Positions 22,432-55,615 of a DNA stretch of 64,000 bases are shown here, one piece after another. The position numbers and the translations under genes are program-made. Under the pieces are notes generated by a model. It searched no databases, had not been told where the DNA came from, and saw nothing but the letters and a program-made list of their open reading frames with translations. This stretch comes from Piromyces finnis finn. Taxonomy: Eukaryota; Fungi; Neocallimastigomycota. The stretch is from contig MCFH01000044.1 of assembly GCA_002104945.1 (NCBI GenBank), positions 248,001 to 312,000 of the forward strand, read 5' to 3'. Each line of letters opens with the position of its first letter. Position 1 is the first letter of the stretch.

Positions 22432-24961
22432 TTAATGATATAGTATATAAATAGAGAAAAGAAACAAAACAAAAGAAAATTTTATACTTATTGAATGCTT
22501 ACAACTATCATCCTCATCACTAAATCCTTTTTTATCATTTTCATTCTCAATTTTTGATACATCAATATTTTTAGTAAATTCAGCACATGCTGAAGATCTT
22601 TTTGTTACAAAATCAATAACACCGTATTCATATCCATCAACAATGGTATCTGACGTATCTATTTCAGTTGAGTATAGATTACCTTCAAAATCACTGTAAG
22701 AAAAATGATTTACTTTTCCTTCAGTTGAAGTTGAAAGATGATCTATTAAATCGAAATTCCATTGAACATCCTCTTTGATTAATTCAGCTAGTGCTTTAAC
22801 ATATTGGGATATAACATCTGGATTAAATGTAATCCTTGTTGTTTTAGCTAATATAGTTTCGTATCTTTTTTTTATTAATGGATGTTTTAATAATGACTTA
22901 GTAAAGAAGTGATCAATGTTATCAGATTCATCATAATTAGTCCATGTTTCACAATCATTTATAAATTCTTCATTAGGTGCTAGTCTTTTGACACCACGTG
23001 ATCCTTGGAGAGTCAGATCGAAATCGTAGGGTAATAATTGATAATTATTTTTTTCTGGGTTAAAGTAAAGTGCAGCATTAGCACCAGTAAGCCAAAAATT
23101 ATCAAGTGCAACAATTAATGCATCAATTACTAATAATCTTAGTGTAGATTCTAAGTTAAGGAATTCTTCTAATTTTTTAATTGCAATTTCGGAAGTATCA
23201 TTACTATAATTCACTTCCCAATCGTTAAAAAGTTTTGTAAAGTTTATAATGTGTGAGTACAATGAATTTTTGTCTTTTGAATTATATTTTGTTTCATCAA
23301 ATTCATCTATTTTATAAAATGTGTAAGAATTTGGATCATCGCCTAAATATTTCAGTCCGTGACTATTATTACCAGAATTATATATTTTGTATGTCATACC
23401 AACATTTGCCTTTTCATTTCCGTGAACATACGCAGCAATCCATTTACTGCTTAAGTTATCATTAAAAGTATATAAACCATATATATCATTATTAATAATA
23501 AGTCTAGCATATGTACCTTCTTGAACAGGAACACCAACGGCATTATACAATTCAGTTGCCACCTTTTCACGAATCAATGTTGGATCACTTGCTAAAGCTC
23601 TTAATTTAATTGCTTTTCTTCCGTGAAATTTTTCATCCAGTTTTATTGCCCATGATAATTTTTTATACTTACGACTTCCAAAACCAATAACATGGAGTGT
23701 TCCTTTTCCTTGATAAGCACTTTTTCGTGTAATAATATTAAATTCACAATTTACAATACTTTCATTTACTTCACTTTGGGCTACAAATGGCGTGGCTTTT
23801 AAATTATCATAAGAGGTTGGATCACAATTGGCATAAACATTATAAATATCATTATTTGGGAATGGTTTAAAATTTTTGGTTCCCATTTTAAACATTTCTC
23901 TAAATGGTTCGGGAAGTTCAGGGATTTTTACTTCTTTAGTAGTTCTGATAATAAAAAATATTATAGTATGTAATATATAAGTAATAAAAGAATTATATAT
24001 ATTGATATTATTATTTATTTTAGAATATTAATTGAAATAATAATATTATTGTATATAAATTAACTTTAAAACTAAATTAACATATTATATTGAATATATT
24101 CATTTTCAAACTATTGATTAAATTTCTATAATTAAATTGTTACTTACCTATTATATACTTCATTAATGGCCTTATTCTCTGATTTATATACTCTTGTTAT
24201 TGTTTCCTCAATTTTTTCACCAGTTGATTTGTCAATAAGTACATATTTATATTCATTTATATTATCTGCAGTAATTGAGCCTGAATATACTTTTATATTT
24301 TAAGTTGATTAATTTTAAATTTGATATGTTTTTTTATTATAGTTTTTAAAATTGATTTAAATAATTAATTTGACATTGTCATTAAAAATAAGCATTGTAT
24401 GACATTTGATTGAATGTTTAAATTGTATATGATGGAATAAATAAAATAAATTATAAAAAATTGTGATAATAATAATAATAATAATAATAATAATAATAAT
24501 AATAATAATAATAATAATAATAATAATAATAATAATAATAATAATAATAATAATATAATAATAATAATAATAATAATAATAATAATAATAATAATAATAA
24601 TAATAATAATAATAATAATAATAATAATAATAATAATAATAATAATAATAATAATAATAATGAAATTAATAAAGATTATATTTTATTATGTTTTATTATG
24701 TTTTACTTACAAGGAAACAATTTTAAAGGCAATTCAGTTACAATTCCATTATATTTTACCCCCATTGAATAAAAGGGTTTATTTATAGAAACTACATTAA
24801 ATGTGTACTGTGCAGCTTTTTTTTTTTTTTTTTTTAAAAAAAAACGATAATAGTATTAATTTAGAAAACATTTAATAGCAATAATAAATAATAATAATAT
24901 ATTTACCCTCACATAAAGCAATAAGAATTGTAATGACAGAACTGAAATATATTTCCTTCAT
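22432..24961 (-). CDS. cotH: CotH-family kinase paralog 1: signal peptide, small N-domain, kinase, GPI-like tail. Exons 24961-24907, 24815-24711, 24289-24148, 23944-22432 (605 codons incl. stop)
   Basis: GFGSRKYKKLSW, KLRALASDPTLIREK, YARLIINNDIYGLY, ALDNFW....NAALY, PYDFD and DVQWN. Leader MKEIYFSSVITILIALCEA. Exon lengths sum in frame. Confidence 0.9.
24469..24660. repeat. (AAT)n microsatellite in cotH1 intron 2
   Basis: Direct reading. Confidence 0.95.
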
Positions 24962-25929
24962 CTTTGAAGTAACATTAATTATTAATTTTTAATTTTTATT
25001 TTATTAATTCTAAATTCTCTTTTTTTTAAAACATTTATTTCTGTATAAATCCACACCTAAATGATTATTTCTTAATAATTATAAGAAAATACACTTTTTT
25101 TTTAGAAATTTTTTTTATACTATAAATTATAAATTAAATTTAAAACAAGCTTTTTTTTTACAAAAATGGTATTGTGTAATTTTTATTTTTCTATATAATA
25201 TATTATTATATAATAAAGTTTCATATAAAAAGTTTAATTAAACAATTAATTCTTGGTAAAACCTTAAATTATAGTAATTTAATTAGTGGATTTATTTTTT
25301 CTAAATTGTTAATATTTATGTAATTACGAAAAAGTTAAAATATTATTAAATTAGGTAAATACTATAAAAACAACATGATTTTTTATAATTTTCTTAATAC
25401 TGATTTAAATATATATAATAATATAATAATATAAAATTAAAATTGGCTATAAATAATTATTAAAATAAACATAAAATGTAATGAAATTATTAAGAATGTT
25501 GTTTTTTAAATTTCTTTTTATTAATAATAGAATTATCAATTTACTAATATTATTAATAACAATATATATATATAAAACTTTTTTGTAGTAAAATTTTTGT
25601 ACGCCATTAATTTTTTACTTTTTAAACTTTATGATTGACTAATATATTTTTTTTTTAAGTTTTATTATCCAATAAAATCAAATTATACTAATTTTAACAT
25701 TACACAATTCAAAAATGGGAATATTATAAAATATAGTTAAATATTACTAAATAATGAACTTTATTCTATATTATATTTTTTTAATATGATAAATGAAAAA
25801 TATATAAAATAAAGTATCCTTTTAATTATAAAATAAAAAAAAAAAAATAATAATATATATATAAATATATATAAAAAAATAATTTAATAAGAAGAAAATG
25901 AATGATAGTATAAAGTAAAAATAAGAAAA

Positions 25930-53439: not shown

Positions 53440-55615
53440 ATGAAAGTAAAATTTTTTGGAATAATTTTATCATCATTTGTAGCTTTAGGGAAAGGTAATA
53501 TAAAATAATATCTTTAAAATATTTAAAAACTTTTTTTTTTATTTTTGAAAAAAAGATAATGAAAAAAAGAAAAAATACTGAGGTATATTATATTTATATA
53601 ATATTTAAATATTTGAATAGCTAAAAACTACAGTTTCAATGTTGTATCAATTTTAGGAGAGGGTTCTTCTATTGGTGTAAAATATGGTGATGTTATAAAA
53701 CCATTAACTGTTTCTCATTTTCCATGTAAATATCAAACCAAATTATAGATATTATTATAATTAATTATATATAAAACTAAAAAATTTTAATATTAATGTG
53801 AATATTATTTAATATAAACCAACGTAAACGTAAATAGTGTTTAGTGGATCTATTGAAGCAGATAATATTGATGTATATAAGTATGTTTCATTAGATTCAA
53901 ATGGTAAAGTAATAGAAGAAGAAAGTATTACTCGAAATTACAGTGATGACAATATCAACGAAGTATATAATAGGTAAAATTAAAAAAAAAAAAACTTTTT
54001 TTTTATATTTTATTAATAAGAAACCATATTAAACCTTTTATATATTAATATCTTGAATTATAATATATTAATGATATTAAGAGTAAATAAGGAAGTTGAA
54101 ATTCCTGAATTACCTCAACTTTTCAAGCCAATGTTTCCAATGGGTGGAAAAAATTTTGAACCAATTCCAAATAGAATTATTTACAATGTTTATGCAAATT
54201 GTGATAAGGATGCATATGCTAATGTTGTTAGCGAACCATTTGTTGGTGGTGATAATAGTGTTCAAAATAATCAATTAGTAAATTGTACTATTACTATTAT
54301 TTCTCCAAAAAATACCTTCCAAAGCAAGGGCTCCATCCATTTAATTGGTTTTGGAAGTCGTTTGTTCAAAAAATTAGCTTGGTCTATTAAATTCGATAAA
54401 AAGTTCTTAGGTAGAAAATCCGTAAAGTTAAGAGCTATGGCTTCAGATCCAACTCTTATTCGTGAAAAATTATCTACTGAATTATACAAAGCTGTTGGAA
54501 TTCCAGTCCAAGAAGGAACTTACGCTCGTCTTTTTATTAATGGTGATATCTATGGTTTATATCTTATCATTGATGGTTTTAGTAAGAAATGGGTTTCTGG
54601 TTATGTTCATGGTGATGCAAAGAAAGACATTGGAATATCATATAAATTATATGCAAAAATCCCACAATATCCTGATTTAAAGTATATTAGTGACGATTAT
54701 AATGATTACACTAGATTCTATATTCCTGATGAATATGAAGATAAAGATGTCGATGAAAATAATTTAGCTACTAAATACTCTCATATTATTGATTTTACTA
54801 AAAAGTTCAATGATTGGGTTAACACTCCAGAAAGACCAGTAAAAAAACTTGGAAGTTTTTTCAATATAGAAGCTGTTCTTCGTCTTATGGTCATTGACAC
54901 ATTAATTCTTGCATTGGATAATTTCTGGCTCCGTTTAAGTAATGCTGCTGTATATTACAACCCAGATCATAATAATTATGTTATCCTTCCTTATGATTTT
55001 GATAAAGTTTTGAATGGTGGAGCAGTTGATCCAGTGATTGATCCTAATACATACATAGGTGATTGCCATACTTGGGCTACTCAACATGAGGAAACTATAG
55101 AACACTTTTTTACTAATTCTCTTTTACAACAACCAGAAATTAAAAAAAGATACGATGTTATATTATCAAAAGTCTCTAATGAACTTTTTAATACTGATGT
55201 TATTTCAAATTATATACATGCTGTTGCTGATTTAATTCGTGATGACGTTCAATGGAATTTTGATACTATCAATTATTTAAATATTCCATATAATGGTATT
55301 GTCAATCATTATTCTCTACAGAATTTTGAAGATAATATTGAAAATGGTCATGTTGATTTTGTTGAGGATTATGTTGTTAATGATGCACACTATGGTCTTA
55401 ATGAATGGGTTGAATTAAGAAGTGAAAGTTGTAAGGCAGATACAGCTGGTGTTGATACTTCTAATAATGATAACATTTCTGATGATTATGATGTTGAAGT
55501 CTACAAATCCTCTAAAGAAGAAATTAAATCTAAGGCTGAAATTAAAGTTACTTTTACAAAAAGTATTGCTTTAATTGTTATTTTATCTCAATTCCTTTTC
55601 TACTATCTTTTTTAA
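53440..55615 (+). CDS. cotH: CotH-family kinase paralog 8. Exons 53440-53494, 53621-53725, 53838-53973, 54082-55615 (610 codons)
   Basis: GFGSRLFKKLAW, RAMASDPTLIREK, ALDNFWLRLSN and PYDFD, plus signal peptide and hydrophobic tail. Confidence 0.9.

Follow-up and report, generated by a model that had tools for sequence, protein, structure and literature searches.

An old tandem array of eight intact fungal-type CotH genes in the anaerobic gut fungus Piromyces finnis

The locus and its genes

The stretch of DNA analysed here, called the window below, comprises 64,000 nucleotides of the Piromyces finnis genome (contig MCFH01000044.1, positions 248,001 to 312,000). Between window positions 22432 and 55615 there are eight long open reading frames (ORFs) of 487-520 amino acids; the first is on the minus strand and the other seven are on the plus strand. 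All eight match the Pfam family CotH (PF08757), with E values between 3e-33 and 6e-40 and scores of 116-138 bits, compared with a curated cut-off of 23.8. A first-pass annotation, made from the sequence alone, had described the region as an array of eight intact CotH genes with open spliced frames. This description was confirmed by the ORFs, Pfam and tblastn, which give eight intact spliced frames and no fragments. The base composition of the window is ~20% G+C.

Each protein is predicted to consist of four parts: a cleavable signal peptide, a β-sandwich of about 85 residues that resembles CBM20 modules, an intact CotH atypical-kinase domain, and an acidic/Ser spacer followed by a signal for the attachment of glycosylphosphatidylinositol (GPI). 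In the corresponding gene, the exon for the signal peptide is followed by two small exons and a long one, and the proteins are 603-624 residues long. The gene models were built from GT-AG borders and the conserved intron phases 1, 1 and 2. Exon 1, which ends in G|GT, encodes M-K-x and then a hydrophobic core. Intron 1 interrupts the codon of the Ala at position -1 of the predicted cleavage region (..L-G-N-A|K-N-Y..) and is gone from CotH4.

For six of the models (CotH1, 3, 5, 6, 7 and 8) there is a public P. finnis protein with exactly the same letters. CotH2 is represented by a partial public model (P0001), which is identical along its 595 residues and stops before the tail. For CotH4 the matches include no exact public model. 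Database searches and folding were carried out with single exons or with the letter-identical public proteins, and for CotH2 and CotH4 the joined models entered alignments, trees and motif tables only.

CotH1 (604 residues; 22432..24961, minus strand) is arranged head-to-head with CotH2. Its exons are at 24961-24907 (signal peptide), 24815-24711 and 24289-24148 (N-terminal domain), and 23944-22432 (CotH kinase domain, spacer and hydrophobic tail). The protein is 100% identical to public P0094, its key residues are intact and its Pfam CotH match has an E value of 1e-34. CotH2 (617 residues; 25930..28128, plus strand), for which the splice sites were read directly, has exons at 25930-25984, 26099-26209, 26324-26468 and 26586-28128. 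It matches Pfam CotH with an E value of 6e-40 and also matches the B. cereus CotH structure 5JD9. CotH3 (611 residues; 29283..31543, plus strand) has exons at 29283-29337, 29533-29637, 29753-29888 and 30004-31543, and is 100% identical to public P0011, the protein used for structure prediction.

CotH4 (615 residues; 35061..37263, plus strand) has three exons, at 35061-35220, where the signal peptide is fused to the first N-domain exon, 35380-35515 and 35712-37263. The last of these matches Pfam CotH with an E value of 7e-39, and the key residues are intact. An alternative in-frame ATG at 35046 would add five residues to this protein. CotH5 (624 residues; 38528..40825, plus strand; exons 38528-38582, 38711-38815, 39030-39174 and 39256-40825) is 100% identical to public P0044. 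The same degree of identity was found between CotH6 (603 residues; 42114..44378, plus strand; exons 42114-42162, 42408-42512, 42598-42739 and 42863-44378; Pfam CotH E 1e-36) and P0027, between CotH7 (616 residues; 46832..49095, plus strand; exons 46832-46892, 47028-47132, 47307-47448 and 47553-49095; Pfam CotH E 4e-33) and P0053, and between CotH8 (609 residues; 53440..55615, plus strand; exons 53440-53494, 53621-53725, 53838-53973 and 54082-55615; Pfam CotH E 2e-36) and P0065.

When the eight proteins were compared with the whole window by tblastn, no ninth CotH copy or fragment was found, and the larger intergenic gaps contain only low-complexity ORFs. No neighbouring Ser-rich substrate gene, by analogy with cotG and cotB of Bacillus, is evident in the intergenic gaps of the array. 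Long AT-rich microsatellites are situated at 24148-24711 (CotH1 intron 2) and 31876-32334. They translate as poly-Leu/Tyr/Ile or as F-I-L-F-Y and yield spurious ORFs, such as the 152-residue ORF at 31876-32334. The possibility that the locus is a pseudogene array in decay was rejected, because all of the frames are open, there are zero fragments and every copy has conserved orthologs.

The kinase domain

The structure of CotH3 (P0011) was predicted with AlphaFold2 from a 65-sequence alignment of the family, with a mean predicted local distance difference test score (pLDDT) of 91.9. The top Foldseek match of the model is the CotH kinase of B. cereus (5JD9/5JDA; E 1e-19, template modelling (TM) score 0.78). 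The next matches are other atypical kinases, which are distant. The window proteins thus have the same fold as Bacillus CotH, and the catalytic Asp, the Asn, the metal-binding Asp and the Arg and Lys-Lys of the N-lobe motif are conserved between them, at an overall identity of 16-17%.

Bacillus CotH phosphorylates Ser residues of proteins and is the only characterised CotH kinase; the B. subtilis enzyme is inactivated by the mutations D228Q and D251A (PMC7821199). These two residues correspond to D224 and D247 in the sequence of 5JD9 and to D388 and D414 in the numbering of CotH3 (P0011). The mapping was done in three steps, by a direct phmmer alignment, by bridging through the bacterial CotH P0106, and by a 12-sequence alignment of fungal and bacterial proteins. 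A gap in the direct alignment set the Bacillus Asp opposite a Trp, and its placement was resolved by the bridged and multiple alignments. In the 12-sequence alignment, which spans bacteria and fungi, D388, N396, D414, K197 and G189 do not vary. The same five residues, and in addition S192, R193 and D416, are invariant in the 65 members of the clade and in all eight window copies.

All eight proteins contain the motifs G-x-G-S-R-x-x-[KR]-K and [YF]-D-[FY]-D together with the four Cys listed by the first-pass annotation, and in 65 family members these features vary little or not at all. The catalytic loop, which had been given as D.....N, is in fact D-[NG]-F-[WY]-x4-N, or D-x7-N. It is three residues longer than the D-x4-N loop of Bacillus; CotH4 alone fits D.....N, by chance. 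The four Cys are C139, C168, C437 and C560. According to the alignment they are invariant in the clade and missing from its Mucoromycota relatives, and they probably form two disulfides.

Catalytic residues can decay in this family. Among the fused CotH modules found elsewhere in the same genome, one has the substitution D388N and has lost the Ser-Arg pair, and another has D414E. Nevertheless, these residues are intact throughout the array.

The N-terminal domain

Exons 2 and 3 encode an N-terminal domain of about 85 residues, a feature overlooked in the first-pass annotation. It is predicted to be a seven-strand β-sandwich (pLDDT 90.8). In an exhaustive structural comparison (VIA) its eight best matches are all CBM20 modules, with Z scores of 7.5-8.9, which are borderline by the tool's own guidance, and root-mean-square deviations (rmsd) of 2.5-3.3 Å. 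The best match is the starch-binding domain (SBD) of glucoamylase (2vn7; Z 8.9, rmsd 2.6 Å, 80 of 87 residues), and the others include STBD1, GDE5, β-amylase and laforin. Foldseek puts the same CBM20 entries first, at an E value of 2e-3. When a profile of the domain was compared with the Protein Data Bank (PDB), the top match was the same glucoamylase CBM20, at a non-significant E value of 0.16, with P-L-[WF]-x-G-T-V and Y-K-Y-[IV] in common. Pfam gave no match, CBM_20 included, to the N-terminal 170 residues.

The domain superposes onto the CBM20 modules of glucoamylase, STBD1 and laforin, yet it lacks the Trp of starch-binding site 1. An invariant Glu stands in its place, and at most one Trp occurs in the whole domain. 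The domain is therefore named CBM20-like in fold only. The domain is common to the gut-fungal proteins and to those of Mucoromycota described below, and suggests a glycan-tethering step.

A CBM20-like fold next to a kinase domain would also fit proteins that phosphorylate glycans rather than proteins. The N-terminal domain would then dock on the glycan of a polysaccharide or glycoprotein and the CotH domain would phosphorylate sugar, as is done in the secretory pathway by the kinases Fam20B and POMK. The uniformity of the eight best structural matches agrees with this explanation, as do the CBM26 or SusF-type starch-binding modules borne by some CotH clusters of the ESM Atlas and the presence of two Mnn2-type mannosyltransferase genes in the same window, although their proximity may be due to chance. 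However, the matches are borderline, the site-1 Trp has been replaced and Trp is essentially absent from the domain, and the sole characterised CotH kinase phosphorylates protein Ser (PMC7821199). A glycan kinase is, on balance, an improbable identity for these proteins.

Secretion signal, spacer and C-terminal tail

The signal-peptide and GPI assignments given here were made with our own heuristics. On this basis all eight proteins begin with a signal-peptide exon, in which the hydrophobic core is followed by small residues at -3 and -1, the latter being Ala. All eight likewise end in a tail of 15-28 uncharged hydrophobic residues at the very C terminus, with a mean Kyte-Doolittle value of 1.9-3.1 and no cytosolic segment. 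Both features agree with the first-pass annotation. Clusters or triplets of small residues lie 20-30 residues before the C terminus; in CotH8 this region is weak and the least canonical. The same tail was found in 54 of 63 full-length family members, and most of the exceptions resemble truncated models. The P. finnis genome encodes the GPI transamidase subunits Gpi8 (Peptidase_C13), Gpi16 and Gaa1, each at one multi-exon locus.

The region between the last Cys and the tail, which had been called a Ser-rich linker, comprises 20-46 residues and is instead a short acidic/Ser/Asn spacer. It has 17-37% Ser and Thr and 24-40% Asp, Glu and Asn, and includes a conserved N-I-S-D-D sequon. Each protein has 4-7 N-glycosylation sequons in total.

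The proteins lack dockerins, as had been noticed. A Pfam search of the six full-length proteins gave CotH as the sole match and no CBM_10 (PF02013) dockerin even at E≤5, and no such dockerin was found in the long exons of CotH2 and CotH4 at E≤0.01. The identification of these proteins as components of the cellulosome was rejected because the dockerin is absent. Their sequences support a secreted, GPI-type layout in silico.

The hydrophobic C terminus could instead be a plain type I transmembrane anchor without a cytosolic tail, or the proteins could be released, so that there would be no link to GPI or to the wall. The AlphaFold2 model has a C-terminal helix (residues 588-610) that is consistent with such an anchor, the GPI assignment is heuristic, and CotH8 is poor in small residues ahead of its tail. 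Against this, the tails are short, they end the protein, they are not followed by charged stop-transfer residues, and in seven of the eight proteins the small-residue clusters are found 20-30 residues from the end. In addition, the genome encodes the transamidase, and GPI signals have been predicted for the related CotH proteins of Mucor (PMC9973265). We consider a plain transmembrane anchor, or release of the proteins, quite unlikely.

Clade membership and age of the array

At least 124 CotH matches were counted in the P. finnis genome. When searched with CotH3, they separate sharply into 18 modules that are 44-100% identical to it (at least 399 bits) and the next group, which is 25-30% identical (at most 84 bits). 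Eight of the 18 modules are in the window, two are on contig C193, six on C68, one on C217 and one on C146. The two C193 members end in the same tails as the window copies. The clade is also present in Piromyces sp. E2, Anaeromyces, Neocallimastix and Orpinomyces.

Some members of the clade have other C termini or arrangements. The C68 modules (44247-57785) are intronless and fused in frame, in ORFs of 1752 residues (three CotH modules), 1025 residues (two) and 619 residues. The C217 member (124194-125570) ends in a region rich in Thr, Val and Lys. The C146 member (333114-334487) ends in a hevein-type chitin-binding domain (PF00187, E 1.5e-6), and the combination of CotH with a chitin-binding domain recurs in environmental contigs (P0131).

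In a tree of 105 sequences none of the window copies has another window copy as its nearest relative. Each is paired, with good support, with a separate ortholog from Piromyces sp. E2 or from environmental gut fungi, and the CotH5 orthogroup also includes proteins of Anaeromyces and Neocallimastix. The paralogs of the window are 45-56% identical to one another and all are intact. With a separate ortholog for each copy and this level of paralog identity, the array is old; it predates the divergence of these gut fungi and all of its members have been kept. A recent local amplification was rejected, since the paralogs have diverged to this extent and are not mutual closest relatives once the orthologs are included.

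In the trees the window clade forms a branch of its own, which has full support and a long stem and stands apart both from the clades of Mucoromycota and from that of the P. finnis CotH proteins with dockerins. With thin bacterial sampling and no settled branching order among these clades, the trees carry no claim about origin.

Expression of the clade is suggested by two environmental contigs from the Joint Genome Institute (JGI), L004 and L005. They are 2.0 kb long and have an uninterrupted coding sequence of 614 residues that is 61% identical to CotH2. This sequence runs straight through all three intron positions (..A-L-A-K-A-K-S-Y.., ..T-F-P-L-F-T-G.. and ..E-V-Y-N-R-T-N-K-K..), and the contigs are therefore most simply explained as spliced mRNA. 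According to the match table, seven orthogroups, that of CotH1 being the exception, include full-length proteins encoded on contigs too short for introns; the case of L004 and L005 alone was read directly.

Relatives in other fungi and in bacteria

In an exhaustive profile search the gut-fungal clade is directly followed by proteins of 540-611 residues, which align from about profile position 5 to positions 500-610. Those that were looked up belonged to Mortierella, Gryganskiella, Podila, Radiomyces and Apophysomyces and to a second gut-fungal group. The full-length layout, including the N-terminal domain, is common to the relatives from Mortierella, Podila, Radiomyces and Apophysomyces and to the second gut-fungal group. 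The signal peptide, N-terminal domain and catalytic residues are kept in these relatives, and GPI-like tails are present in Podila (P0155) and in the second gut-fungal group. Word-index homology searches returned gut-fungal and a few bacterial proteins; the Mucoromycota relatives surfaced only in the exhaustive search of representatives.

The CotH proteins of Mucoromycota (Mucorales CotH1-17 and those of Mortierellomycotina) are the nearest relatives outside the gut fungi. They are collinear with the window proteins over almost the full length, with E values of 1e-65 to 1e-50, and in the ESM Atlas the likeness has a feature score of 0.98 and a structural TM score of 0.75 over residues 14-589. 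Both groups have a signal peptide, an N-terminal domain with the pattern Y-N-V-V ... P-L ... Y-x-Y-V ... E-E/Q-E ... N-E-F-F-x-R, and a CotH domain with invariant Asp, Asn and Asp. They differ in that the sequences are only 23-25% identical and the four invariant Cys of the window clade are absent from the Mucoromycota proteins. In Mucor, CotH proteins have signal peptides, GPI signals are predicted in 4 of 17, and cotH genes are needed for normal spore formation (PMC9973265).

The dockerin-bearing CotH proteins of gut-fungal cellulosomes belong to the same Pfam family and are encoded in the same genome, and they are secreted like the window proteins. They nevertheless form another fully supported clade, with 25-30% identity to the window proteins. 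Their ORFs have C-terminal CBM_10 dockerins where the window proteins have the GPI-type tail, and the N-terminal domain is not seen in those ORFs. About one fifth of gut-fungal dockerin proteins are CotH, for which binding to the plant wall has been speculated (PMC8665504, PMC10978972), and some dockerin-CotH genes have been reported as transfers from bacteria (PMC11291939). Bacillus CotH has no signal peptide, CBM20-like domain, Cys pairs or GPI signal, and it acts within the mother cell on CotB and CotG.

The first-pass annotation took the array to be a separate, catalytically intact subfamily. Its separation from dockerin-bearing CotH in a clade of its own and the presence of the catalytic residues in all eight copies agree with that view, but the layout is shared with the CotH of Mucoromycota. 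It is the ancestral layout of fungal CotH and is not new. The novelty implied for the array was not supported either. The genes are publicly annotated as encoding CotH-domain proteins, the gut-fungal expansion of CotH has been published, with 348 copies in two genomes distributed over several gut-fungal CotH groups (PMC10079182), and a signal peptide with a GPI signal is a known layout in Mucor (PMC9973265). Our literature search found no paper on GPI-type CotH in anaerobic fungi. Given its membership in a known and annotated family, the locus is a well-preserved example of fungal CotH rather than a new system.

The relationship with Mucoromycota gives some weight to another explanation, in which the proteins are surface adhesins or ligand-binding proteins and the kinase fold is a non-catalytic scaffold, as in Rhizopus CotH3 bound to host GRP78. 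The paralogs would have diversified in binding to the plant cell wall, to other microbes or to gut surfaces. Consistent with this, the nearest relatives outside the gut fungi have the same layout, the N-terminal domain resembles a carbohydrate-binding module, and the paralogs have diverged strongly (45-56% identity). In the literature, Mucorales CotH are treated as invasins, and the dockerin-bearing proteins are those for which plant-wall binding has been speculated (PMC10079182, PMC8665504). On the other hand, the catalytic Asp, the Asn, the metal-binding Asp and G-x-G-S-R...K are invariant in 65 members and from bacteria to fungi, and this would be difficult to account for if no nucleotide or phosphotransfer chemistry were involved. 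Furthermore, the GRP78-binding motif of the Mucorales invasins, MGQTNDGAYRDPTDNN, has a best ungapped identity of only 4-5 of 16 residues in the window proteins, and QTNDGAY is absent from them. Non-catalytic adhesins are thus a possible explanation, which we nonetheless consider unlikely.

Neighbouring genes

Two genes of the family Mannosyl_trans3 (PF11051) are situated upstream of the array on the plus strand, at 1307-2992 (E 3e-44) and 19246-20832 (E 1e-45). We take this family to be that of the yeast mannan-branching enzymes Mnn2 and Mnn5. The genes fit the theme of cell-wall glycoproteins, and their adjacency to the array may be accidental. A full-length gene for the RNA of the signal recognition particle (SRP) lies between the nearer mannosyltransferase gene and CotH1, at 21514-21810 on the plus strand (Rfam Metazoa_SRP RF00017, 145 bits, E 2e-37).

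On the other side of the array, an ORF of 993 residues (60885-63866, minus strand) has Cys-rich 'G-Y-Y ... C' repeats and a hydrophobic C-terminal stretch, and no Pfam match. Its sequence makes it a candidate for another surface protein adjoining the array. Within 14119-15076, a WH2-like motif (L-L-A-S-I-R-N-A-G-I-G-S-L-K-H-V) beside a Pro-rich region is encoded on the minus strand. The same segment lies in a 32% G+C island and reads as a Gly-rich ORF on the plus strand. It is probably a gene for an actin regulator of the WASP/verprolin type.

Function and significance

The reading that we favour, with modest confidence, is that the eight old tandem paralogs are fungal-type CotH proteins that are GPI-anchored and act as catalytically active kinases in building the fungal surface. 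CotH1-8 would enter the endoplasmic reticulum (ER) and gain a GPI anchor there. The anchored proteins would then reach the plasma membrane or be cross-linked into the wall, with the N-terminal domain tethering them to glycan. They would use ATP to phosphorylate co-secreted or wall-bound substrates, most plausibly in the lumen of the ER and Golgi, because ATP is available there, and perhaps also at the surface. The eight paralogs that have been kept would differ in substrate or in life stage.

A role in building or modifying the fungal surface is likely by analogy with Bacillus CotH, which patterns the spore coat, and with Mucor cotH, which takes part in spore formation. The chitin-binding domain at the end of one clade member also favours a place at the surface. 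We infer that extracellular phosphorylation, as proposed in the first-pass annotation, may occur at the fungal surface.

Several points weigh against this reading. To our knowledge, no fungal CotH has been demonstrated to be an active kinase, and the characterised fungal proteins, CotH2 and CotH3 of Rhizopus, are host-binding invasins. Extracellular ATP is scarce. The starch-binding Trp is lost from the CBM20-like domain, the region ahead of the CotH8 tail is weak, and the signal-peptide and GPI assignments are heuristic.

A bolder form of the surface-kinase proposal can be put forward only tentatively. In it each protein would be an active, surface-tethered kinase with its own wall or secreted substrate, either protein or glycan, on which it would be docked by the CBM20-like domain, and the array would be a eukaryotic counterpart of the Bacillus spore-coat phosphorylation module. 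If this is true, the kinase set would pattern the surface of the rhizoid, sporangium or zoospore cyst of anaerobic fungi, and by extension the CotH virulence factors of Mucorales might also be ecto-kinases.

Among the gene expansions of anaerobic gut fungi that still lack an explanation, CotH is one of the largest, and in Mucorales it is a virulence factor. We know of no fungal CotH with a demonstrated enzymatic function. The array provides clean experimental targets, namely eight intact, dockerin-free and probably GPI-anchored paralogs with invariant catalytic residues, each of which represents its own orthogroup conserved across gut fungi. If kinase activity were shown for them, the understanding of both the gut-fungal expansion and the Mucorales invasins would change.

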